From IMG/VR virus record IMGVR_UViG_3300031707_000001, positions 62,001-126,000 of that record: a stretch of 64,000 nucleotides of DNA. The stretch is one strand, 5' to 3'. How positions within the stretch are numbered: position 1 is the stretch's first letter; each line of letters begins with the position of its first letter. The position numbers and the translations under genes are program-made. The notes under the pieces are model-generated. The model made no database searches. It had not been told where the DNA came from and worked only from the letters and a program-made list of their open reading frames with translations. This document shows positions 1,643 to 41,602 of the stretch, one piece after another.

Positions 1643-1760
1643 GGCAGGGTAGCTCAGTTGGTAGAGCACGTAATCGTACAGTTTGTATGAACTGGCTACA
1701 GCAACCAAAATTACCCTTATAAGGTCGTGGTCGTGGGTTCGAATCCCACCCCTGCCACCA
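1643..1760 (+). tRNA. tRNA-like gene (Ile, anticodon TAT, if the insert is removed) with a 42-nt insert in the anticodon stem
   Basis: Acceptor GGCAGGG/CCCTGCC+A+CCA, D arm GCTC-AGTTGGTA-GAGC, T arm GTGGG-TTCGAAT-CCCAC. Removing 1671-1712 gives CGACC-CTTATAA-GGTCG. Confidence 0.75.
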
Positions 1761-1762
1761 AT

Positions 1763-1874
1763 CGGATCGGAGTGTAACGGTAGCACAGCGGTAAATATGT
1801 ACAGATTGTATAATCTGTCTACAGCCATCAAAATGGAACCGCAGGACCAGGTTCAATTCCTGGCGATCCGACCA
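1763..1874 (+). tRNA. tRNA-like gene (Pro-like C1:G72/A73 acceptor) with a 45-nt anticodon loop
   Basis: Acceptor CGGATCG/CGATCCG+A+CCA, D arm GTGT-AACGGTA-GCAC, anticodon stem GCGGT/ACCGC enclosing 1793-1837, T arm CCAGG-TTCAATT-CCTGG. Confidence 0.7.
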
Positions 1875-1876
1875 TT

Positions 1877-1914
1877 CTTAATTTCAGGTGCAAGTGCGTT
1901 ATAATACATGTAGG
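1877..1914 (+). promoter_or_regulatory. repeated promoter-like element CTTAAT-N17-TATAAT (copy 1)
   Basis: CTTAAT 1877-1882, 17-nt spacer, TATAAT 1900-1905, then ACATGTAGG. Same layout at 10384, 16282 and 16729. Confidence 0.6.
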
Positions 1915-2020
1915 AAATAATACTCTCGCCGACCCGGCAGATGAAATCACAAATACAGCTGCCACGGTTTTCGGCAGAGCATCCTACAGAAGAACAGCCG
2001 ATAGGCGTTCTTCTTTCCTA

Positions 2021-2050
2021 TTGACTATCCTAGTACCTACGTGGTACTGT
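2021..2050 (+). promoter_or_regulatory. sigma70-like promoter for the small-RNA/DUF2828 unit
   Basis: TTGACT 2021-2026, 18 nt, TG-n-TACTGT 2042-2050. Predicted start falls just before the first stem unit at ~2059. Confidence 0.5.
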
Positions 2051-2058
2051 TTCTCCTC

Positions 2059-2497
2059 AAAGGCTGTCTACAGCAGACAATCTACACGTAAGTATAGAGT
2101 GTACAGCCTGTTCTCCGATTTTGATGCGTAAGGGTGGATACTGCAAACAAATATCTGGGTAACCAGAATAAATGAAACATGACCGGTGCTTGAAACACTG
2201 GTCCACCCGAGGGTACCTCCGGGTGAGTGGGTACCTCCTGGCCACAGCCATAGGCAATCCTGTGGGACCACTCTGTGCATCGATACTTTTAAGGGTGTCT
2301 GCAGCAACCAATATAGCCTGAAAAGCTAACCATCTGTACACCCTGTTTATGAGCGTAAGGATAACTACCGCAACCTAAAAAATTTGCCTTCAACGCAAAC
2401 CAATGCGTATCCTGTGCTCACCCTCTATTTTTCATTTTAAGGCTGTCTGCAGCAACTCAAAATATCATACCATTCGCATGATATGTACAGCCTGTTT
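2059..2497 (+). ncRNA. cluster of five related small stem-closed RNAs (Y-RNA-like candidates)
   Basis: Units at 2061-2109 (AGGCTGT/ACAGCCT), 2132-2208 (GGGTGGA/TCCACCC), 2292-2344 (AGGGTGT/ACACCCT), 2358-2413 (AGGATA/TATCCT) and 2440-2493 (AGGCTGT/ACAGCCT). Each 5' stem is followed by a CT(A/G)CAGCA-like motif and an A-rich tract. Confidence 0.65.
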
Positions 2498-2544
2498 ATT
2501 TTGTCCACAATACATCAACCTAAACCTAAGGAAGGAGTTGGCCG

Positions 2545-4149
2545 ATGATCAGAGGACACAATAAGGATGTGCTCTACGAGCACACGTTAGACCATGCCCT
2601 GGAATTCTTCAGCAAGGCCGGCAGCTTATACGTCATGGGACCACGGGGTCGTAAGCCCTTTGAGCCCTATGGCGGCGAGCATGCTGAAACGTCTGCGCTG
2701 GCATTGTTCCAGGCCGTTTGGGCCGTCAACTACAGGGAAGCACACCTCGATGCTATGCGGCTGTTGTTCTGGCTGCGTGACTGTCGGGGAGGGGCGGGTA
2801 ACCGTTCCGGCTTCCGTTCTTGTCTTCACTGGCTGGCAACCGATGCCGGTCCGGAGGCCAGGGAGTGGTTGAAGCTAAACCTGTCTCGGATTCCCGAGCA
2901 TGGTCGTATGGATGATCTTGAATGCCTGTTTGGTACGCCTCTGGAACCGGAGGCTGCCAAGCTATGGGCAGCAGGCATCAAAGCAGCCGATCACTACGCC
3001 TTGAAATGGGCCAAGCGGAACATGCGTCCGCTGCAGAAGGTCCTGGGCGTGAACGAAGCCGGTCTGAGAAAGCTTTTGTCAAAGCCGGAGAGAAAGACAG
3101 TTGAGCAGCACATGTGCTCCAACTTGTCCATTTGTCCACATTGCAAGAAACTGACCCACTGGTCAAAGCCATCAACAAAGAACACAGGTAACCCGTGGGA
3201 TCGAGCAGGTGAAGGCACGTTGGCTACCGATCTTTATGCGTGTTCCGAATGCGGGACTATGCAACGAGGGCCAATCAAGTGGGAGCCGATCGAGTACAAA
3301 GCTGTGCCGTCCAAGGCCATGAAGGCATATGCAAAAGCATTTGCCAAGCACGACCCGGAAGGATTTACAGGCTTCAAGGATAAGCTGAAGAAGGGTGAGA
3401 CCAAGGTTAATGCTTCAGTCCTGTTTCCACACGACTGCAAGCATGGGGTTGACAACGGTGATCCCGAAATCGCCGATGCCCAGTTCGATGCTTTGCCCGA
3501 CTACATGGGCAAGACCAACCAGCGCATCATGTGCCTGGTGGATACTTCAGGCAGTATGAGCGCTGCCGTCGCAGGCGGTACAGTCATGCGGATCGACGTG
3601 TCGGTTTCGCTTGGCTTGTATTGCAGTGACCGATTGGGCAAAGAGAATCCACTGTACCGGAAGTATATGGAGTTCTCCTCCAATCCATCCTTCAAGGATT
3701 GGAAAGGCAAGAAGTTCTCTGAAGCTTGTCAGGACCAGGATGGGTGGTGTGGCTCGACTAACATCGAAGCCGCATTGGACTTCCTTCTGGCCTTCGCCAA
3801 GAAGCAGAAGATTCAGCCGGAATATATGATCAATACACTGTTGATCCTATCAGATATGCAATTCGATCAGGGTACGGGAGCAGGCAATACCAATCGAACC
3901 GTGGTAGAGAATTGCATGATACGTTGGGCAGACGCAGGTTACGACATACCTAAAATTGTTTACTGGAACCTCGCTGGGTACGCCGGACAGCCGGCAACTT
4001 CCCAGTCTGAGAATATCGGACTCGTGTCTGGTTTCTCGCCTTCTGTTCTGAAGGCGATCTTGGCCGGTGATGATTTTAGTCCTGTCGCTATCATGCGCCG
4101 AGCCCTGGATAAATACCAGGTAACGGCTCCCGCAAATAAGAGCCGATGA
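2545..4149 (+). CDS. DUF2828-family protein (TROVE/Ro60-like helical domain + C-terminal vWA)
   Basis: LFWLRDCRGGAGNR, IPEHGRMDDL, VEQHMC..W..IEYKAVPSKAM, CLVDTSGSM (MIDAS), GSTN, LILSDMQFD, IVYWNL, GLVSGFSP. RBS AAGGAG. Confidence 0.85.
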   Translation: MIRGHNKDVLYEHTLDHALEFFSKAGSLYVMGPRGRKPFEPYGGEHAETSALALFQAVWAVNYREAHLDAMRLLFWLRDCRGGAGNRSGFRSCLHWLATDAGPEAREWLKLNLSRIPEHGRMDDLECLFGTPLEPEAAKLWAAGIKAADHYALKWAKRNMRPLQKVLGVNEAGLRKLLSKPERKTVEQHMCSNLSICPHCKKLTHWSKPSTKNTGNPWDRAGEGTLATDLYACSECGTMQRGPIKWEPIEYKAVPSKAMKAYAKAFAKHDPEGFTGFKDKLKKGETKVNASVLFPHDCKHGVDNGDPEIADAQFDALPDYMGKTNQRIMCLVDTSGSMSAAVAGGTVMRIDVSVSLGLYCSDRLGKENPLYRKYMEFSSNPSFKDWKGKKFSEACQDQDGWCGSTNIEAALDFLLAFAKKQKIQPEYMINTLLILSDMQFDQGTGAGNTNRTVVENCMIRWADAGYDIPKIVYWNLAGYAGQPATSQSENIGLVSGFSPSVLKAILAGDDFSPVAIMRRALDKYQVTAPANKSR

Positions 4150-4161
4150 TTTGAACCTACC

Positions 4162-4197
4162 GTGTGGCTGGGGGTTTTCCCCAGCCACACTTACTTT
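4162..4197 (+). terminator. intrinsic terminator after the DUF2828 gene
   Basis: 12-bp stem GTGTGGCTGGGG/CCCCAGCCACAC followed by TTACTTT. Confidence 0.75.
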
Positions 4198-5098: not shown

Positions 5099-5105
5099 TA
5101 CTCTC

Positions 5106-5940
5106 CTTGTGCAGTAAAGCCAATTAAGCGAGAGTTGTGTACGGTGAGGTTTGGTGATGGTGACGTTGGGTGGCGTTTGGTGCGGTGATGTCCGGTGTCG
5201 GTAAAGTGGGGTAACGTCACGTGCTGTATGAGTAGTGTTCGGTCTTGTCCTGCCACGTCTAGTAACAGTGTTGCGCTGCGTGGTTCGGTCTAGTTACAGT
5301 GGTGTGGGGCGCTCTGTAGTCCAGTACTGTCATGGTTATGTGAAATACTGTCTAGTTAAGGTGGAGTAAAGTCCTGTATCGTCAGGTTCTGGTGATGTGG
5401 AGTTTAGTCCCATATCGTCAGGGTGAGGTATTGCCGAGTGATGTGCGGTGACGTAGTGTCCGGTTTCGTGATGCGTAGGTAATGTCTAGCCCGGCATTGT
5501 CGAGCAATAGTGTTGTGTGGTCCGGTACTGCGTGGTCCGGTATAGGTAATGTATAGCACAGTGATGTGATGCATAGTTTTGGTGGTGTTTGCTAAAGCTA
5601 TGTGCAGTAATGGTGGAGTGCGGTCCAGCCATGTTTCGTGTGGGTCAAGTCAAGCCTTGCCAAGTCTCGTTTCGGTTCCTCATATGTGTAGTGATGCGGC
5701 GTTACGGTGGCGTCATGCCATGCGAGGTGATGTGATGGTAGCGTCAGGCAGCGTAAAGCTGAGTGTTGGTGTCGTAAAGTTCAGCCAAGTCCGTGTAGGG
5801 TTCTGTGCGGTCCTGTTGAGGTGTGGCAAAGCGCTGTTAGGCCATGGTTTGGTTGGGTCTAGTCGAGCGGTGTCACGGTCATGTGAAGCCAGGTCGACTA
5901 CAGTGATGGTGTAGTTGAGTCAAGTGTTGCGCCGTGGTGC
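5106..5940 (+). ncRNA. periodic NNN-GY pentamer array with NNN-RGT hexamer punctuation (putative guide-RNA array)
   Basis: Hand parse gives ~160 units. Over 90% of pentamers end in GT/GC (9 exceptions counted), and 24 hexamers end in GGT (20) or AGT (4), with modal spacing 31 nt. Confidence 0.85.
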
Positions 5941-5943
5941 TTC

Positions 5944-5976
5944 GGGCTCCCTGCTGTCGGGGAGCCCTTTCTTTTC
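5944..5976 (+). terminator. intrinsic terminator closing the array
   Basis: GGGCTCCC/GGGAGCCC 8-bp stem followed by TTTCTTTT, 3 nt after the last pentamer. Confidence 0.85.
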
Positions 5977-6016: not shown

Positions 6017-6145
6017 ATGAAGAAAGGATATACGTTGGTTGAAGTAATGATTGCTGTTGTTTTCCTGGCTATAGCGATTGCTGTAGTAATGGGGGCAATA
6101 CAATCAACCGGGTGTGGCCGGTTTATAGGAGATATGCTTCGATGA
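6017..6145 (+). CDS. 42-aa peptide with a type IV prepilin N-terminal cleavage/methylation motif
   Basis: MKKG|YTLVEVMIAVVFLAIAIAVV matches the class III signal G|FTLxE followed by a hydrophobic helix. AAGGAA RBS. Confidence 0.7.
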   Translation: MKKGYTLVEVMIAVVFLAIAIAVVMGAIQSTGCGRFIGDMLR

Positions 6146-33001: not shown

Positions 33002-36000
33002 ATGCCTCAGCTTCCGGAAAATCTCCGTGAGTTCGACGATACGGATAAGACCAGGGAACTCATTTACTCCAACGTAATGGATTCGCTGCAGAAGCGTTTT
33101 CCTATTGAGGACAACGAGTATCGTTTGGAACTATCCGGCCTGAAGTATTCTGGTCCTCAGCACTTTTCCCTTGACCAACAGAAACAAGCCCTGATGAAGG
33201 ATCGGCACTTGCACACTCCGATTACAGGGAAGTGGCGCTTGATGGACAAGGCCAACAATGCTGTACTTGGCGAGAAGGAAGACGTTGTAATGAACGTCCC
33301 GTACTACACGCCACGGGGAACATTCATCTTCAATGGCAACGAGTACAGTACAGTCAATCAGTCCCGTTTGAAGCCTGGTGCCTATACTCGTAAGCGTAAG
33401 ACGGGCGAAGTGGAAACGCAATTCAACGTACGGCCTGGGACCGGCCGGCCGTTCCATTTGCGTCTGGAACCAGAAACGGGTATCTTCCGCATCAGCGTTG
33501 AACAATCGAACATTCCTCTCTATACCCTGTTGAATACACTGGGCGTATCTGATAAGGAACTCATGCAGGCATGGGGTCCAGAGATGCTTGAAGCCAATAT
33601 CAAGAAGCAAGATAAGCGGGCCCTTCCAAAGATGTACGAACGTTTTTCGGGGTATAAGTACGATCCCAATGCCCGGGAAGACCAGATGAAGCAGTACATC
33701 AACGAGGCTTTGGCAAAGTTTGAATTGGACCCGGACGTCATGGCTCGTACGCTTGGCATTCGTGACACGAAGAACGTTACGCCACAGGCTCTTATTAGAG
33801 CCACGCAGAAGATGTTGAATGTATCCAAAGGCACAGAGGAGCCAGACGATCGTGATGCTCCAATGTACAGCAACATCTACAGCGTTGAAGATTTACTTCA
33901 GGAGCGCATAGACAAGGATGCCGGAAGACTGGCCAAGACATTACTGTATAAAGCACGTCGTACAAAGAACTTAGACCATGTACGTCGTGGGGCACTAGAT
34001 CCATACATCATGGGACAGAACGGGTTCCTTCTGGCCTCTCGATTGACAATGCCGTTGGAAGAAACCAATCCGCTGCATACGCTGGAGCAATCCGCCCGCA
34101 TTACCAAGTTGGGACAGGGCGGTATAAGCTCTGCCGAATCCATTACTGATGCAGCCCGGGACGTGAACAATGGGCAGTTTGGATTCGTTGACCCGATCAC
34201 TGGACCAGAGCACATCAACGTGGGTATTGACGTGCGTGCCGCTTACAAGAGTTTCAAGGGCAAAGACAAACAGATCTATGGGGAGTTCAGACATCCTGGA
34301 AGCGGAAAGATGTTCTACCTAAGACCTGAAGACGTAGCAGACAAAGCCGTGGCGTTTCCTGGCGAAATGAAGAAGCCAGGAGATACGGCTGTCGTTATGC
34401 AAAACGGGAAAATCAAACGAGTTGCGAAGCCAGAGGTTGACTTTGAGGTTCCATCCTTTGGTCACATGATGTCTTCGCATACGAACATGAATCCTATGCC
34501 AACAGCCGTCCTTCCTGGTCGGCAATTCTATGGCGCAAAATTCTGGAGTCAGTATCTGCCTATGGTAGACGGGGAAACCCCGTTGGTGGATTCTTTAACG
34601 CCAGAAGGCAAACAGACATTCGGTGAATACTACGGACGTAAGGTAGGAGCGCTGAATTCGAAGGTTGCGGGAACTGTAGCGAAAATCACAGATAACAGCA
34701 TTACCGTTGTTGGTGATGATGGTCAAAAACACGTTACTGAATTGGTGAAGGACTTCCCGTTTAACCGACTGACCGGGATCAGTTATTTCCCGGCCGTGAA
34801 GCCTGGAGACAGGGTGAATGTAGGTGATATGGTAGCTCACTCCAACTTCACGGACTCCAAGACGGGAGGGATTAACATGGGCCGCAACCTGAAGACCCTG
34901 ATGATGCCGGCCCGAGGTATGTCTTACGAAGATGCATATGTTATCAGCGAATCGGCCTCAAAGAAAATGACAACGGAGCGACTATATGGATTCGACCAGG
35001 AAAGCAGACAGGGCGTCGATATTGGAAAGAACAAGTTCATTTCAACCTTTGCCCAGAAATTCACCAAGGACCAGGTGTCCAACATTGACGACGAAGGCGT
35101 GGTCAAGCCCGGCACCGTTGTCAGCAAGGGCGATCCTCTCATCCTCGCTGTTGGACCTAAACTCCTTACCTCCGCCGACGCACAACTGGGCAAGCTGCAT
35201 AAAGTGCTGCGAAACGCCTTTACCGACAAATCCGTGATATGGGAATCCAACTATCCTGGTACAGTTACAGATGTGGCTATGACCGGGCATGGTGCCCGTG
35301 TGAACGTAAAGAGCATTCCGCCCGTTCAAGTCGGCGACAAGTTGTCCACACGGTTTGGACTGAAGGGTGTGGTTGGCCGTATTCTACCGGACGATCAGAT
35401 GCCCCGGGATCTGGTAACCAATGACCCCTATGATATGCTGCTCAATCCTATGGGCGTGCTGTCCCGTGTGGCGCCAAATCAGATCATTGAAATGAATCTG
35501 GCCAAGATTGCCAAGAAGACCGGCCAGCCTATTCGTTTACCCCAGGAGCCTCCTCCAGAAGGTTGGGCTGCTTGGGCCAAGAAGCAAATGGATGCAGCTG
35601 GCATCAAGGAAGACAATGACATCTTCGATCCAGTTACGGGAAAGACCATTAAGGGCGTATCAGATGGGTTTGTGTATACAGCGGCATTCCACCACTTGGC
35701 GGAAAAGAAGCTGTCTGCCCGTGGAGAGTCGGGTGCCTATACAATCGACGAACAGCCAGCCAAGGGTGGATTCGAAGGCGCCAAGCGATTCAGCCAGATG
35801 GACGTGAATGCTACGCTGGCACACGGTGCGCCCGAAGTCATTCGGGACGTACAGTTGATTCGTGGTACCAAGAATGAAGAGTTCTGGAAGGCCCTGAAGT
35901 TGGGCCGGCCACTACCCGAACCAACAGTTCCTTTTATCTATGACAAGTTCCTCAATACGCTTCGAGCAGGTGGCGTCAACGTGCAGGAAAAGGGGGACAT

Positions 36001-37393
36001 AGTATCGCTCATGCCTATGACCGATGCTGACGTAGATAGCTTGTCTAAAGGCAAACTGGAGAGCAAGCGTCCATTCGATATGGTAACGCCTGACTTTGAA
36101 CCTATACCTGGTGGGCTGTTCGACATGGGCAAGACAGGTGGCATGAACGGCAATCGCTGGACCCATATCGATCTTGTTGAACCTTTGCCCAACCCTGTGA
36201 TGGAGGAGCCTATTCGCCGAATACTTGGCTTGAAGGTACAGGAACTCAGGGATGTAGTTTCCGGCAAAGCATCCATCAATGGCTTGGCCGGTGGACGTGG
36301 ACTGCAGGAAGCCCTAAAGAATATAGACATTGATGCTGCCATTGAAGAGCACAAGGACAAGGTCAAGTCGCTGCGTGGATCCAACCGTGACAATTCCGTA
36401 AAGGTATTGGGATATTTGTCAGCAGCGAAGAAGCAGGGTGTGCATCCTTCAGCCTGGATGATCACCAAGGTACCCGTACTTCCACCTAAGTTTCGACCCG
36501 TATCACGTATGGGCGACGTTGCATTGATTACCGATCTAAATGAGCTATATGCCTCAGTCATGGAAGTAAACAATAACATCCGTGACATGCGCAAGGTATT
36601 GCCGGAGAGTGAGACAGCAGAACAGAAAGAGTTGCTATATGATGCAGTCTCGGCCGCATTTGGTTTGGGCGATCCCATTACTACAGAAGGTAAGTCCAAG
36701 CGTTTGAAGGGCGCCATTCGTCAGATTATTGGGGCCAGCCCAAAGTCTGGAATGTTCCAATCCCGGGTTATCTCTAAGACTGTAAGCGATGTAGGGCGTG
36801 GCGTAGTAACGCCCGATCCTAATCTGGATATGGACAGCATTGGCATTCCAGAGGATTCAGCGTGGAGTCTCTATAAAGACTTTGTAATGCGCCGACTGGT
36901 ACGTCGGGGTTATCCGTCCGTACGATCGTTGGAACTGATTGAGAAGAAAGATCCAGTTGCCAAGGAAATGTTGGAAGCTGAAATGGCTAGCCGGCCTGTA
37001 TTGGTGGACCGGGCCCCAACGTGGCACAAGTTCAATCTGTTGGCTATGTATCCACACATTTCGGACGGCAATACTATCCGTGTATCGCCACTGGTGACCA
37101 AGGGATTCAACATGGACTTCGACGGCGACCAGGCCAACTTCCACGTTCCCGTGAGCGATAAAGCTGTTGAACAAGCCAAGAACAAAATGCTACCATCACG
37201 CAATTTGTTCAGCTTGACCGATTTGAAATCGGTACGTCACTCTCCATCCATGGAGATGACATTGGGTCTATATTGGCTGACCCGGGAAAAGACAGGTAAG
37301 GCACCGTTGCGGTTTGCTTCGCTTACAGATGCTAAGAAAGCATACCACGAAGGCAAGATTGGGTTGAACGATCCGATCACAATAGGAGCATAA
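33002..37393 (+). CDS. rpoB: phage multisubunit RNA polymerase: beta subunit fused to the N-terminal half of beta' (contains the catalytic DFDGD)
   Basis: Beta motifs GTFIFNG, MSYEDAYVISE, GDKLSTRFGLKGVV, LLNPMGVLSR, HLAEKKLSARG. Beta' motifs WMITKVPVLPPKFRP, DLNELY, VLVDRAPTWHK, FNMDFDGDQANFHVP. Confidence 0.95.
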   Translation: MPQLPENLREFDDTDKTRELIYSNVMDSLQKRFPIEDNEYRLELSGLKYSGPQHFSLDQQKQALMKDRHLHTPITGKWRLMDKANNAVLGEKEDVVMNVPYYTPRGTFIFNGNEYSTVNQSRLKPGAYTRKRKTGEVETQFNVRPGTGRPFHLRLEPETGIFRISVEQSNIPLYTLLNTLGVSDKELMQAWGPEMLEANIKKQDKRALPKMYERFSGYKYDPNAREDQMKQYINEALAKFELDPDVMARTLGIRDTKNVTPQALIRATQKMLNVSKGTEEPDDRDAPMYSNIYSVEDLLQERIDKDAGRLAKTLLYKARRTKNLDHVRRGALDPYIMGQNGFLLASRLTMPLEETNPLHTLEQSARITKLGQGGISSAESITDAARDVNNGQFGFVDPITGPEHINVGIDVRAAYKSFKGKDKQIYGEFRHPGSGKMFYLRPEDVADKAVAFPGEMKKPGDTAVVMQNGKIKRVAKPEVDFEVPSFGHMMSSHTNMNPMPTAVLPGRQFYGAKFWSQYLPMVDGETPLVDSLTPEGKQTFGEYYGRKVGALNSKVAGTVAKITDNSITVVGDDGQKHVTELVKDFPFNRLTGISYFPAVKPGDRVNVGDMVAHSNFTDSKTGGINMGRNLKTLMMPARGMSYEDAYVISESASKKMTTERLYGFDQESRQGVDIGKNKFISTFAQKFTKDQVSNIDDEGVVKPGTVVSKGDPLILAVGPKLLTSADAQLGKLHKVLRNAFTDKSVIWESNYPGTVTDVAMTGHGARVNVKSIPPVQVGDKLSTRFGLKGVVGRILPDDQMPRDLVTNDPYDMLLNPMGVLSRVAPNQIIEMNLAKIAKKTGQPIRLPQEPPPEGWAAWAKKQMDAAGIKEDNDIFDPVTGKTIKGVSDGFVYTAAFHHLAEKKLSARGESGAYTIDEQPAKGGFEGAKRFSQMDVNATLAHGAPEVIRDVQLIRGTKNEEFWKALKLGRPLPEPTVPFIYDKFLNTLRAGGVNVQEKGDIVSLMPMTDADVDSLSKGKLESKRPFDMVTPDFEPIPGGLFDMGKTGGMNGNRWTHIDLVEPLPNPVMEEPIRRILGLKVQELRDVVSGKASINGLAGGRGLQEALKNIDIDAAIEEHKDKVKSLRGSNRDNSVKVLGYLSAAKKQGVHPSAWMITKVPVLPPKFRPVSRMGDVALITDLNELYASVMEVNNNIRDMRKVLPESETAEQKELLYDAVSAAFGLGDPITTEGKSKRLKGAIRQIIGASPKSGMFQSRVISKTVSDVGRGVVTPDPNLDMDSIGIPEDSAWSLYKDFVMRRLVRRGYPSVRSLELIEKKDPVAKEMLEAEMASRPVLVDRAPTWHKFNLLAMYPHISDGNTIRVSPLVTKGFNMDFDGDQANFHVPVSDKAVEQAKNKMLPSRNLFSLTDLKSVRHSPSMEMTLGLYWLTREKTGKAPLRFASLTDAKKAYHEGKIGLNDPITIGA

Positions 37394-39215: not shown

Positions 39216-39746
39216 ATGGACAACCCACAATTGGGATTTACCCAAAGGCTCGATGTTGAATTGAAATCTTGTAGTATGCCATCGCACGATCCTCGAAGAG
39301 GTTCAACGGAAGAATTGATTCGTGACATGCATAGGATCCTCACAGGCAACGGAGACTTCAACCACGGTTTGATCTTCAAGGTGGCGTCTGCCAATACCAA
39401 CCTGGGAATGCTACAGGAAAGTGTAAATGGTATGTCAACCAAACTAGATGGTCAGATTACAAAATGTCTGGCGATACAGAATGCCCACGCACTTGAGGCG
39501 GCAGAGAGGACGACAGTAGCCAAGGTAGGAAGAGCCATATGGGAAAACAAGTCCTTGATTTTTGTGATTGTTCTTGGAGCTTTAGTATACTGGGGAACTA
39601 TTACCAAACAGGCAGCGGCGGGCATTGGAGAAGAAAAGCTGGCGAAGTTGGTTGATGCTCGAATAGAGAAAATTCTTCCCGGCGGCACTTCGTTATTGCC
39701 ATCCAAACAGCAACCCAATCCAACCAAACAAATCAAGACACCTTGA
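39216..39746 (+). CDS. coiled-coil protein with one C-proximal TM helix
   Basis: SLIFVIVLGALVYWGTI. GAGGT RBS. Confidence 0.55.
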   Translation: MDNPQLGFTQRLDVELKSCSMPSHDPRRGSTEELIRDMHRILTGNGDFNHGLIFKVASANTNLGMLQESVNGMSTKLDGQITKCLAIQNAHALEAAERTTVAKVGRAIWENKSLIFVIVLGALVYWGTITKQAAAGIGEEKLAKLVDARIEKILPGGTSLLPSKQQPNPTKQIKTP

Positions 39747-41602
39747 TGAAGCCTACCACCCTCGGACAAATCCTAGTCAATGACGCTCTTCCAGAAAAGT
39801 TCAGGAACTATGATCGTGTCCTGACCAAGGCAGAAGCAGATACGTTATTGACACAGATAGCCAAGGAAGTTCCCGATCAGTACAAGCATATTTCGTGGGA
39901 ACTTGTACAATTGGGAAAGGAAGCTGCTTTCACAGAAGGAAGCACACTCAAACTATCCGATCTACAGCCTGTATTCGACAAGACTGATCTACTCAAGCAT
40001 GTTGAACAGCAGGAGAAAAAGATCAAAGCCAGCAAAAGCATGACCGAGGAAGAAAAGCAGCAAGCCCTGGAAACAGTTTATACAGAAGTGCAGAAACTTA
40101 TCGTGGATCAAACATATGATTCGGCTTTAGCCAACAACAATCCGTTTGCCATTCAAGTAAAGTCAAAAGCTCGTGGTAACAAGTCGCAGTTGACGGCACT
40201 ACTGTCAACCCCATCTGTCTATCAGGATGCACAGGAACGCACCATACCGGTATTCATTCGTCGGAGCTATTCCGAAGGACTCGATCCTCACGAATACTGG
40301 GCATCTACATATGGCGCCCGCAAGGCCATTATCGCCACCAAGTTTGCAACCCGGGATGCTGGTGCGTTGGGTAAGCAGCTGGGAGTAGCTGTATCCAACT
40401 TGGTTGTGACTCAAGACGATTGTGGTACACCAGCCGGCATTCCGGTACCTACGGACGATAAAGACAATGTCGGAGCAGTTTTGTCCAGGAATACTGGACG
40501 CTATCCAGCCGGAACTGTAATTACCAAAGAAGTCTTAGCCGATTTGAAGCAGAAGAAAATGGACGAGATTGTTGTGCGTTCACCTATGACCTGTAGTTTG
40601 GCGGAAGGCGTTTGCAAACGGTGTGCCGGCTTACGGGAAGATGGAAACTTCCCACCAATCGGTTATCATCTGGGATTGAATGCTTCATCGGCTTTAGCTG
40701 AACGTATTGCACAGGCATCTCTTAATCAGAAGCATACAGGTGGACAACGTGATCCCAAAGGACACATCGTTTATGCTGGATTCGATGTGATTAACAACCT
40801 GGCCCAGGTTCCAAAGAATTTCCCAAATCGTGCTACAGTTGCAGAACACGAAGGTACAGTCGATAAGATTGAGGAAGCGCCACAGGGTGGTTGGAACGTA
40901 ATCATTGATAACAACGCCCACTACGTTCCGGCCGATCGGCCATTGCTTGTGAAGGAAGGTGACAAAGTAGAGCAAGGCGATACGCTTTCCGAAGGTATTG
41001 TCAATCCCGCTGATGCGGTACGTTTGAAGGGTATAGGAGAAGGCAGACGCTATTTTGCTGAGCGGTTTACCAAAGCTTTCAGGGAATCAGACTTTGAAGT
41101 CAACCGAAGAAACGTTGAAGCTGTAGCCAGGGCATCCATCGATCATGTAAGCGTAGACGATCCAGAAGGCGTCGGTGACTTCCTGCCCGGAGACATCATT
41201 TCGTATAGCGGGGTTGCACATTCTTATCGTCCTCGTGCAGATGCCCAGCAGTTGGATCCAGCCAAAGCCAAAGGTATGTATCTGGAACAGCCCGCATTAC
41301 ACTATACGATTGGTACACGGCTTACAGGTAAAATGGCTGAGGCATTAAAGAAGCACGGAGTGGGTAGTGTAATCGTACATCCACAGCCTGCAGGGTTCAG
41401 TTCTACCATGGTTGGTGTAACCAAGGTTCCGGCGTATACAGACGACTGGATGGCCAGATTGGGCTCTACATACTTGGAATCCCGCCTACTTGAAGATGTT
41501 CAACGTGGTGCAAAATCCAACGTGCACGGGCTAGAACCGTTGCCTGGTATTGCGAAAGGTGTTGAATTCGGTCAGCCGAAAGGTTCAAAATTTACTTACT
41601 AG
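39746..41602 (+). CDS. rpoC: phage RNA polymerase beta' C-terminal half
   Basis: TTLGQILVN, SKARGNKSQ, SYSEGL..EYWASTYGARK (bridge-helix region), VTQDDCGT, VRSPMTC..VCKRC, ASSALAERIAQASLNQKHTGG (trigger-loop region). Confidence 0.93.
   Translation: MKPTTLGQILVNDALPEKFRNYDRVLTKAEADTLLTQIAKEVPDQYKHISWELVQLGKEAAFTEGSTLKLSDLQPVFDKTDLLKHVEQQEKKIKASKSMTEEEKQQALETVYTEVQKLIVDQTYDSALANNNPFAIQVKSKARGNKSQLTALLSTPSVYQDAQERTIPVFIRRSYSEGLDPHEYWASTYGARKAIIATKFATRDAGALGKQLGVAVSNLVVTQDDCGTPAGIPVPTDDKDNVGAVLSRNTGRYPAGTVITKEVLADLKQKKMDEIVVRSPMTCSLAEGVCKRCAGLREDGNFPPIGYHLGLNASSALAERIAQASLNQKHTGGQRDPKGHIVYAGFDVINNLAQVPKNFPNRATVAEHEGTVDKIEEAPQGGWNVIIDNNAHYVPADRPLLVKEGDKVEQGDTLSEGIVNPADAVRLKGIGEGRRYFAERFTKAFRESDFEVNRRNVEAVARASIDHVSVDDPEGVGDFLPGDIISYSGVAHSYRPRADAQQLDPAKAKGMYLEQPALHYTIGTRLTGKMAEALKKHGVGSVIVHPQPAGFSSTMVGVTKVPAYTDDWMARLGSTYLESRLLEDVQRGAKSNVHGLEPLPGIAKGVEFGQPKGSKFTY

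Follow-up and report, generated by a model that had tools for sequence, protein, structure and literature searches.

What are five short, similar repeats that stand directly before the gene for a DUF2828 protein, and what is their relationship to the tRNA-like genes beside them, in which elements of the same kind recur? The question is raised by a 64-kb stretch of DNA (64,000 nucleotides, referred to here as the window) from the 210,732-bp viral contig IMGVR_UViG_3300031707_000001, in which window positions 1643-4190 constitute a single plus-strand block made up of two tRNA-like genes, an array of five short repeats (2058-2496), a 534-codon gene and a terminator-like hairpin. The repeats are genes for small stem-closed RNAs, members of a widespread family encoded beside the DUF2828 gene in many phages. 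That they are the cognate RNAs of the DUF2828 protein is probable, judging from sequence comparison and from the analogy with Y RNAs and Ro60. That a Ro60-type protein can have small RNAs as its genomic neighbours is known in principle; what is new is the constant "handle" of these RNAs, their display of anticodon arms, the embedding of a circularly permuted form in tRNAs and a resemblance to the Class I RNAs of Dictyostelium. Literature searches yielded no description of the RNA family or of DUF2828 function, the nearest approaches being a guess about Y RNAs by the authors who studied Listeria phage CKA15 and a 2014 survey of YrlA RNAs.

Linkage of the RNA family to the DUF2828 gene

The strongest evidence comes from comparison with other loci. 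Eighty viral loci encoding relatives of the window protein, the window among them, were each oriented with the gene on the plus strand, and a plain count of the motif showed that copies pile up directly before or after the DUF2828 gene. A covariance model (R1) was built from a seed of 16 clear units from eight sources, namely the window and seven other loci, and was used in the locus searches with a cut-off of E <= 1. In the window and the other 79 viral loci it gave 120 matches, 119 of them on the strand of the gene, and 60 of the 80 loci were matched. Upstream of the gene there were 95 matches, with a median distance of 74 nt to its estimated start, and beyond its stop there were 22, with a median distance of 60 nt. 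When the 79 loci other than the window are considered, 102 of 114 matches fall in a flanking zone that reaches 600 nt upstream and 400 nt downstream of the gene and makes up 5.8% of the strand-specific search space (binomial P ~1e-111). An independent set of 80 bacterial and archaeal contigs encoding a homolog, none of which contributed a sequence to the seed, produced 77 matches that adjoin the gene and are all on its strand (77/77), giving for the two independent collections 196 of 197 matches on the same strand as the DUF2828 gene. As many as seven units occur at a single locus, and the DUF2828 genes and RNAs usually sit within phage tRNA/tmRNA gene clusters. A scan of the window at Rfam gathering thresholds returned one tRNA only, and the unit family is absent from Rfam 15. 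An earlier, sequence-only reading of this DNA had proposed that the repeats are cognate RNAs of a phage Ro60-like protein and had named a lack of motif enrichment near DUF2828 genes as the result that would count against the proposal; the enrichment is massive, and the proposal is well supported by the comparative evidence of RNA-gene linkage and of fold.

A consensus computed over 188 distinct R1 matches has the plan (A/U)AGG-stem, U-N-CAGCAA, A-rich linker, variable hairpin, stem-CCUG(U). The 5' end reads (A/U)-A-G-R, with the A conserved at 87-91% and the G at 96% in the viral set, the two G positions falling to 69-82% in the less well aligned prokaryotic set, and the fifth stem position is a near-invariant U:A pair. 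Directly after the 5' strand comes U-(A/U)-C-A-G-C-A-A, in which conservation of CAGCAA is 90-100%, the C, G, C and A each reaching 99-100%. The 3' end is C-U-G(-U), with conservation of 95% for the C (viral set), 91% for the U, 98-100% for the G and 70-75% for the final U. Across the family the sequence is A-rich both after the motif and before the 3' strand. In the seed alignment of 16 units pairing in the terminal helix reaches 99% and five of seven pairs show double changes, though the pairing figure is partly circular since the seeds were picked for having a stem; in the independent prokaryotic-contig set, where the alignment was fitted to the model, the helix is 98% paired with compensatory changes at all seven pairs. 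Predicted unit lengths are about 55-80 nt.

The window units are typical of this plan (Table 1). Each has (A/U)AGG with a 5' strand of 6-7 nt, a motif of the form CU(A/G)C(A/C)GCA(A/G), an A-rich stretch, a variable hairpin, the complementary 3' strand and G-U(-U), and U1, U3, U4 and U5 are 50-58 nt long by their predicted ends, with stems of 6-7 bp. The terminal stem closes all five units in RNAfold, but single-sequence z-scores are modest (-1.0 to -2.5) and the case therefore rests on the comparative data. When R1 was run unfiltered over all 64 kb it scored U3 at 53.3, U5 at 52.2, U4 at 43.6 and U1 at 41.5 bits (E 3e-10 to 2e-7, that of U1 being 1.7e-7), and beyond the array no score exceeded 14 bits anywhere. 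U2, in which the CUG after the 3' stem strand is absent, scored only 13.8 bits (E 0.5), so that the count becomes four good units and one degenerate one. The five units of the sequence-only reading were thus all located at the positions it gave, four of them at 42-53 bits, and the covariation it saw in their stems is borne out within the window and across the family; the GU that it placed before the 3' stem as a feature of the unit turned out to be confined to the paralogs of this phage, the family-wide 3' feature being C-U-G(-U). As a plain string, CTRCMGCAA occurs eight times in the window against 2.4 +/- 1.7 times in shuffled sequence, four of the eight copies lying at 1696-2455 on the plus strand. 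The matches at 6078, 18849, 23945 and 49152, all on the minus strand, were considered as further units and ruled out, as R1 gives no match there.

U5 ends 49 nt before the DUF2828 ATG. A scan for sigma-70 promoters found nothing meaningful near the array and no promoter between array and gene. Open reading frames with RNA polymerase beta (Rpb2) and beta-prime (Rpb1) domains lie at 33002-37393, where both domains are found together in one 1463-aa product, and at 39743-41602. These pieces of a multisubunit RNA polymerase indicate a jumbo phage, and a polymerase of the phage's own may explain the missing sigma-70-type promoters near the array.

Table 1. Features of the window block, in window coordinates; unit ends are predicted.
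Feature	Coordinates	Unit or body	Terminal stem	Motif	Strand	Basis
tRNA, anticodon UAU (Ile-type), with 42-nt insert	1643-1760	body to 1757; CCA 1758-1760			+	Rfam, hand reading
tRNA-like RNA with acceptor stem, T arm and CCA	1763-1874	body to 1871			+	sequence reading, fold, Rfam 16.6 bits
U1, small stem-closed RNA, inner hairpin with 4-nt loop	2058-2112	2061-2110	2061-2067 with 2103-2109	CUACAGCAG, 2068-2076	+	R1, fold
U2, degenerate or divergent member	2128-2211	2131-2209	2132-2137 with 2203-2208	UACUGCAA	+	R1, fold
U3	2289-2347	2292-2346	2292-2298 with 2338-2344	CUGCAGCAA, 2299-2307	+	R1, loop scan
U4	2355-2416	2358-2415	2358-2363 with 2408-2413	CUACCGCAA, 2365-2373	+	R1, RF01414 match, loop scan
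U5	2437-2496	2440-2495	2440-2446 with 2487-2493	CUGCAGCAA, 2447-2455	+	R1
DUF2828 + DUF7788 gene, 534 aa, Ro60-like HEAT ring + vWA	2545-4149				+	Pfam, PHROG, AlphaFold2/Foldseek
Terminator-like hairpin closing the tRNA/small-RNA/DUF2828 block, 13-bp GC-rich stem then T-rich tail	4162-4190				+

The handle in tRNA genes and the display of tRNA parts

The same handle is found inside tRNA genes. ARAGORN reports no tRNA in the window, and the two tRNA-like genes were read by hand and with Rfam. In the Ile-type gene the insert (1671-1712) follows nucleotide 28 (G28) of the anticodon stem and consists of UA, a few nucleotides, a hairpin (1679-1694), CUACAGCAA (1696-1704) and an 8-nt A-rich linker (1705-1712), beyond which come an arm at 1713-1725, containing the last three anticodon-stem pairs and the loop CUUAUAA, and then C-G at 1726-1727. 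Removal of the insert restores a perfect anticodon arm. The Rfam tRNA model scores the gene at 51.9 bits and places a 55-nt insertion between pairs 27-28 and 42-43. The second gene carries a capped handle between GCGGU (1788-1792) and ACCGC (1838-1842), with a hairpin at 1801-1818, CUACAGCC at 1819-1826 and then AUCAAAAUGGA, and is without a canonical anticodon loop. A homologous arrangement, including the AAUGGAACCG stretch, occurs at two further loci (L023, positions 3755-3875, and L048), and we read the window gene and its L023 relative as tRNA-like RNAs and not as decoding tRNAs. At L023 a UUACAGCAA motif also overlaps the 5' acceptor strand (AGCAAGG) of the handle-bearing gene (3741-3875), which is thus associated with two motif copies.

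The arrangement is general among other phages. A gene 74% similar to that at 1643 occurs in Serratia phage BF and in Erwinia jumbo phages related to it, annotated as tRNA-Pseudo or tRNA-Lys. In this gene an insert at the same site presents a hairpin, then CUUACAGCAA, then a Lys-UUU arm; the DUF2828 gene occurs in the genus of BF, in Yersinia phage fHe-Yen9-04. A search of viral contigs for the shared D arm and first insert bases gave 72 loci, about 16 of which have the handle in a tRNA at this position. Their 11 distinct sequences all have the layout CG, UA, hairpin, UNCAGCAA, linker, anticodon arm, CG, with hairpins that vary in sequence and in every case pair. Six of the 11 are Lys-UUU tRNAs, and the rest include Asn-GUU, Arg-CCU and the UAU tRNA of the window. 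About 20 of the 72 loci show another topology, in which the D arm is followed by C-G-U-A, an A-rich stretch and the 3' strand of a unit ending in CCUG, that is, a permuted tRNA-like interior. Eleven of the 72 loci include a DUF2828 gene within a few kb, and together the 72 hold 65 R1 matches. There are therefore two arrangements of the same elements: either the ends of the RNA lie at the handle stem, or the handle stem is capped and the ends lie at the acceptor stem. The earlier claim of a circular permutation in the tRNA inserts was correct, and the 11 sequences extend it beyond this phage, but its placing of the tRNA body in the slot of the inner hairpin has to be revised, for it is the anticodon arm that occupies the slot, the rest of the tRNA lying between that arm and the strand leading back to the capped stem.

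What the free units hold in this slot begins after 7-12 A-rich nt from the motif, and is often a part of a tRNA. An anticodon-arm mimic, taken as a hairpin with 4 or more base pairs and a 7-nt [C/U]U-NNN-purine-N loop, was found in 42 of 175 units, compared with 5.3 +/- 2.0 (maximum 10) when the interiors were shuffled. Typical loops, on 5-bp stems, are CUUGAAA, CUCAUAA, CUGAAAA and CUUUUAA. Three of the window units are of this kind: U2 (loop CUUGAAA, in its second inner hairpin), U3 (CUGAAAA) and U4 (CUUCAAC, on a 5-bp stem). Further units contain a copy of a T arm or a complete permuted tRNA-like domain comprising T arm, loop-capped acceptor stem and D arm, whole modules of the latter sort being present at L005, L081, L048 and L164. 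In Serratia phage BF (L001, 11523-11587) a free unit copies the Lys-UUU anticodon arm with the loop CUUUUAA, and it shares a tRNA block with the handle-bearing tRNA-Lys.

Some other features of these tRNA genes may be recorded here. A second type of insert, 45-90 nt long and without CAGCAA, occurs at the same site after nucleotide 28, mostly in Asn-GUU tRNAs, with a conserved GUUACU just 5' of the anticodon arm (L167 4110-4236, L169 297-421, L187 4102-4223, and also L199, L202, L208 and L227); this suggests a general and previously undescribed way of interrupting phage tRNA genes. In four DUF2828-bearing contigs ARAGORN reports a "Pyl" tRNA with the anticodon CUA (L007 8147-8223, L014 7682-7755, L051 2314-2390, L062 1670-1744); these are likely to be amber suppressors and hint at stop-codon recoding in those phages. 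Genes for tmRNA are present at L038, L040 and L051.

The Ro60-like protein and comparison with Y RNAs and Class I RNAs

The window protein matches the Pfam families DUF7788 (3e-34) and DUF2828 (3e-17) and PHROG 850, "RNA-binding protein". An AlphaFold2 model built with 23 homologs has a mean predicted local distance difference test score of 83, and when it was compared with the PDB by Foldseek the top nine matches were all Ro60/Rsr structures (E 2.5e-7 to 8.5e-5, template modelling scores 0.44-0.52) spanning the full length over about 600 aligned columns, and thereafter only vWA domains. Among these top matches are Deinococcus Rsr, Xenopus Ro60, the Ro60 of Thermus phage phiLo and Ro60 complexes with misfolded pre-5S rRNA. 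One structural neighbour cluster in the ESM Atlas mixes TROVE, DUF7788 and DUF2828 annotations, and when DUF7788 clusters are excluded the nearest clusters are TROVE/vWA_Ro60. The metal-ion-dependent adhesion site is intact in the window protein (DTSGSM 333-338, T405, D437), and its DxSxS...T...D signature is invariant in the 23 homologs. However, neither the window protein nor its homologs in four cultured phages, among them the "Ro-like RNA binding protein" of mycobacteriophage Rumpelstiltskin, match Pfam TROVE (PF05731), and phmmer found nothing similar to the window protein among PDB chains, so that the relation to Ro60 is visible only at the level of fold. The modelling thus supports a Ro60-type HEAT ring with a vWA domain, where "Ro60-like" refers to fold and architecture; of the earlier label "Ro60/TROVE-like" the first half stands on fold and the second finds no counterpart in Pfam. 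Inside the HEAT region is a zinc-ribbon-like CPHC...CSEC insert (residues 197-236, window 3133-3252), which is present in the window protein and its closest relatives (~530 aa) and missing from most homologs (~470 aa); residues 213-226 of it are modelled at low confidence.

Homologs were found in 686 phage records, including Felix O1-type coliphages, Listeria phages of the P100/A511 type and cluster L mycobacteriophages, and the position of the units differs among the cultured phages. In Escherichia coli phage EC6 they are downstream of the gene and interleaved with tRNAs, in Listeria phage LP-125 there are three directly upstream of the gene, which is followed 1.3 kb downstream by a gene for an RtcB-like ligase, and in Rumpelstiltskin three lie downstream, with a terminal pair U:A in place of A:U and with a tRNA-like domain in the middle unit. 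There are some hints of expression. In Listeria phage CKA15 three very highly transcribed non-coding regions lie within 2 kb upstream of the DUF2828 gene, and the authors speculated that they might be Y RNAs (PMC12282133). Three units occupy the unannotated gap directly upstream of the CKA15 gene, with a promoter (TTGACA-17-TATCAT) just before them of the type described for highly transcribed unannotated regions near tRNA genes (PMC12282133), and at L023 too a promoter stands directly in front of the units. The CKA15 DUF2828 protein (CKA15_055; L166 296-1816, minus strand) was detected in purified virions with 57% sequence coverage (PMC12282133) and so may be packaged and delivered with the genome. 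A separate stretch of the CKA15 genome, 26,236-26,727 (L166 2840-3390, minus strand), accounts for up to 67% of phage transcripts (PMC12282133); it lies about 650 nt upstream of the three units, has its own TTGACA...TATAGT promoter and is not matched by R1.

The nearest functional counterpart is the pair of Ro60 and Y RNA. Y RNAs are stem-closed, are encoded as same-strand neighbours of the Ro60 that binds them, occur also in phages and can mimic tRNA (PMC4201824, PMC12135203). The RNAs described here resemble them, and the bacterial and phage YrlA RNAs (RF02553), with the Ro60-Yrl pair of Thermus phage phiLo among them, in being closed by a stem, often present in several copies and placed beside the gene of a HEAT + vWA ring protein on the same strand, as are 196 of the 197 matches, though the neighbour is Ro60-like by fold only and consists of DUF2828 + DUF7788 and not Pfam TROVE. 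A second module can take the form of a tRNA-like domain with a capped acceptor stem, as in YrlA, but the domain (T arm, D arm, capped acceptor) is seen in a minority of family members and is absent from the five free units of the window, which carry hairpins or anticodon-arm mimics. Most units are about 60 nt long and hold no more than a hairpin, anticodon-arm-like or other. The terminal stem is 7 bp long, unlike the long terminal stem of Y RNAs with its Ro60-binding helix, and the permuted form is embedded in real tRNAs. YrlA scores of 14.8 bits in the window, 32.1 at L005 and 21.4 at L164 are all far below the gathering score of 69, and the L005 match (5452-5566) is made through the tRNA-like part only, with the outer stems mismatched. 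Given these scores and the different handle, the RNAs would work like Y RNAs and are not members of the YrlA family. Some tRNA-like phage members, such as those of cluster L mycobacteriophages, may already have been counted in the YrlA survey of Chen et al. 2014.

There is a close and unforeseen likeness in sequence to the Class I RNAs of Dictyostelium. By definition these are RNAs of about 60 nt (42-65 nt) whose ends are joined by a 6-bp stem that varies in sequence but keeps its pairing (Kjellin et al. 2021, PMC7919456), and which have an 11-nt motif CCUUACAGCAA beside the 5' strand, a variable interior, an AAG start and a CUGU end, the G of which pairs with C (PMC7919456). The phage handle mirrors this order of AAG start, short stem, UUACAGCAA and CUGU end: the start and end agree with the phage consensus at the level of sequence only, only the last eight of the 11 motif nucleotides match the phage U-(A/U)-CAGCAA at the same position, a short end-joining stem is formed by U1, U3, U4 and U5 with family-wide covariation, and the variable interior of the phage units is A-rich. 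A permissive Rfam scan of the array matched RF01414 to U4 over its full length at 16.9 bits, and for units of four unrelated phages no Rfam family other than tRNA scores better than RF01414, which aligns with them in register over its full length, with scores of 21.0 and 20.9 bits at L004, 19.7 and 16.9 in EC6, and 18.9 and 14.5 in Rumpelstiltskin. The family-specific E-values in these three follow-up phages are about 3e-5 to 2e-3 when the reported values are divided by 4227 families. All scores (14.5-21.0 bits) are under the gathering score of 41.5, and what is seen is therefore resemblance and not membership.

The differences from Class I are equally clear. Class I RNAs are eukaryotic, are transcribed singly from DUSE promoters about 60 nt upstream and have been reported as unique to Dictyostelia (PMC7919456), whereas the phage units stand in arrays or tRNA clusters, and the known direct binder of Class I RNA is the RRM protein Rnp1A/CIBP. 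A pull-down with DdR-21 recovered GuaB, NdkC, CIBP/Rnp1A and DDB_G0281243, the last described as "function unknown" (preprint of the Class I paper). A literature search for DUF2828, PF11443 or UCP015417 returned only plant mentions and a tardigrade gene-transfer analysis. It is conceivable, though we would not regard it as the favoured outcome, that the Class I RNAs belong to the phage RNA family as its eukaryotic branch and that their handle docks a DUF2828-type Ro60-like protein, possibly DDB_G0281243. If so, DUF2828 and its RNAs would be a second ribonucleoprotein lineage, parallel to Ro60 and shared by phages and eukaryotes, which the amoebae, as feeders on bacteria, perhaps obtained by gene transfer. 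The link would also supply a concrete protein-partner hypothesis for the Class I RNAs, which are abundant and developmentally regulated and whose function has been open since 2004.

Possible roles and their alternatives

The explanation preferred here is that the array encodes small RNAs co-encoded with a Ro60-like ring protein (DUF2828 + vWA) in the manner of Y RNAs with Ro60. Each RNA has a constant handle, made up of the end-joining helix (5' (A/U)AGG, 3' CCU), the U-N-CAGCAA strand and the invariant 3' G (usually GU), which by analogy with Ro60 and Y RNA would be the docking site for the DUF2828 protein, and the protein would in turn stabilise the RNA. The display module, whether anticodon arm, T arm or tRNA-like domain, would by the same analogy engage a second factor, and the tRNA-embedded form offers a genuine anticodon arm where the free units carry a mimic. 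The particle might in this way present tRNA arms as abundant, protein-protected baits or scaffolds in a conflict between phage and host over tRNA, the candidate partners being host anticodon nucleases, for which the units would be decoys or baits, or enzymes of tRNA repair or turnover, for which they would be scaffolds. Enzymes acting on tRNA arms are the likeliest partners because the displayed modules are parts of tRNAs, Lys-UUU dominates the embedded set, the setting is a tRNA cluster and RtcB is sometimes encoded nearby. Such a function is the likeliest, but the specific bait role is much less probable than the pairing of these RNAs with the DUF2828 protein. Protection or repair of tRNAs, which the sequence-only reading raised, is likewise a possible function only.

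Several observations weigh against the explanation as a whole or in part. Roughly three in four units failed the screen for an anticodon-like loop, so that a "tRNA-arm bait" cannot be the whole story. No R1 match at E <= 1 was found in 20 of the 80 viral loci. One DUF2828 locus without a match is that of fHe-Yen9-04, an Eneladusvirus jumbo phage, and conversely Serratia phage BF, also an Eneladusvirus, has units and the tRNA-embedded handle in a tRNA block where no gene annotated as DUF2828 or as an RNA-binding protein was found within the 12 kb examined; the adjacency of gene and units is thus not universal. The handle (AGG stem, UNCAGCAA, CUG) is unlike the Ro-binding bulged helix of Y RNAs or its GNCGAA/CGAA motif, and the analogy with Y RNAs is in consequence one of architecture and gene linkage only. 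The CKA15 units could not be confirmed from the text of the paper as being among the highly transcribed regions, and the most abundant transcript region of that phage (26,236-26,727) is a different non-coding stretch (PMC12282133).

An important consideration is whether the units act as free RNAs at all, or whether they are cis-acting elements, for example autoregulatory sites, in the leader of the DUF2828 mRNA. Most matches are indeed on the same strand just upstream of the start codon (median 74 nt), and in the window there are only 49 nt and no promoter between U5 and the ATG. A leader element should not, however, be found downstream of the gene, where 22 matches and all of the units of EC6 and Rumpelstiltskin are placed, and it is difficult to reconcile with up to seven copies per locus, with the BF units in a tRNA block, with the tRNA-like domains that many units carry and with the promoters directly before the units at L023 and in CKA15. 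We consider a leader function unlikely; as it too presumes binding of the handle by the protein, it would be one version of the preferred explanation and no contradiction of it. A greater departure would be to regard the handle as a processing or splicing signal, by which the tRNA insert is cut out and the halves religated, or the ends of the permuted modules joined, with free minimal units as by-products or decoys of the machinery and DUF2828 as a cofactor. The insert always follows nucleotide 28, and its removal restores a 5-bp anticodon stem with a canonical 7-nt loop. The ribosome contacts anticodon-stem pairs 29-41 and 30-40, and an insert at 28/29 should for that reason be incompatible with decoding. 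The unrelated GUUACU insert at the same site suggests a general mechanism of insertion and removal, both normal and permuted gene orders occur, and RtcB is encoded nearby in LP-125. Yet no splicing endonuclease was recognised among the window open reading frames scanned, no bulge-helix-bulge could be drawn at the junctions (by inspection only), and most units hold no tRNA at all. In the permuted modules a short loop caps the acceptor stem and CCA is absent, as in YrlA, so that these modules do not look like tRNA precursors.

Group I tRNA introns lie in the anticodon loop and have self-splicing cores exceeding 200 nt, and the archaeal bulge-helix-bulge consists of two 3-nt bulges separated by a 4-bp helix, while the insert described here is 42 nt long and is in the anticodon stem after nucleotide 28, and Rfam scans of the window found no intron family. 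There is some likeness to archaeal non-canonical introns and to the permuted tRNA genes of Cyanidioschyzon, in that the insert is not at 37/38 but inside the anticodon stem and that normal and permuted orders coexist. They differ in the phage setting, in the capped acceptor stems of the permuted modules, in that no bulge-helix-bulge motif or splicing endonuclease gene was found, and in the presence of the conserved motif of the phage insert also in free RNAs linked to one protein family. A splicing function is, in our judgement, also an improbable explanation of the handle. The suggestion that the conserved junction is a small self-cleaving ribozyme cutting polycistronic tRNA/small-RNA transcripts might draw on the near-invariant nucleotides at a helical junction, the circularly permuted forms and the tandem arrays between tRNA genes. 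It is rejected here as highly improbable: no Rfam ribozyme family matched even at E <= 10, the invariant residues are at the extreme ends of the predicted mature RNA and not round an internal cleavage site, and the tight linkage to one protein family would be left unexplained. The look-alike Class I RNAs, moreover, are stable, abundant and full-length, have promoters of their own and keep both conserved ends (PMC7919456).

If the units are, as seems probable, partners of the DUF2828 protein, the consequences would reach beyond this phage. DUF2828 is a large family: scoring of candidates turned up over 3,500 clusters, and the P100/A511-type Listeria phages that carry homologs are used in food safety. 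With a defined and easily recognised RNA partner, DUF2828 would become a ribonucleoprotein open to experiment in model phage-host systems. The display of anticodon arms and the presence of the handle in tRNA-Lys(UUU)-type genes point to the tRNA-cleavage arms race, an active field of phage defence, and the permuted embedded form together with the second insert type shows that tRNA finders overlook a form of interruption present in some phage tRNA genes.

Elsewhere in the window, 1 kb downstream of the DUF2828 gene, 850 nt without a convincing open reading frame (5100-5975) are strongly skewed towards G and T, with a GC skew of +0.25 to +0.37 and an AT skew of about -0.3, contain degenerate repeats of ~26-37 nt and end in a strong terminator-like hairpin (5944-5967). 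This stretch could be a long non-coding RNA.

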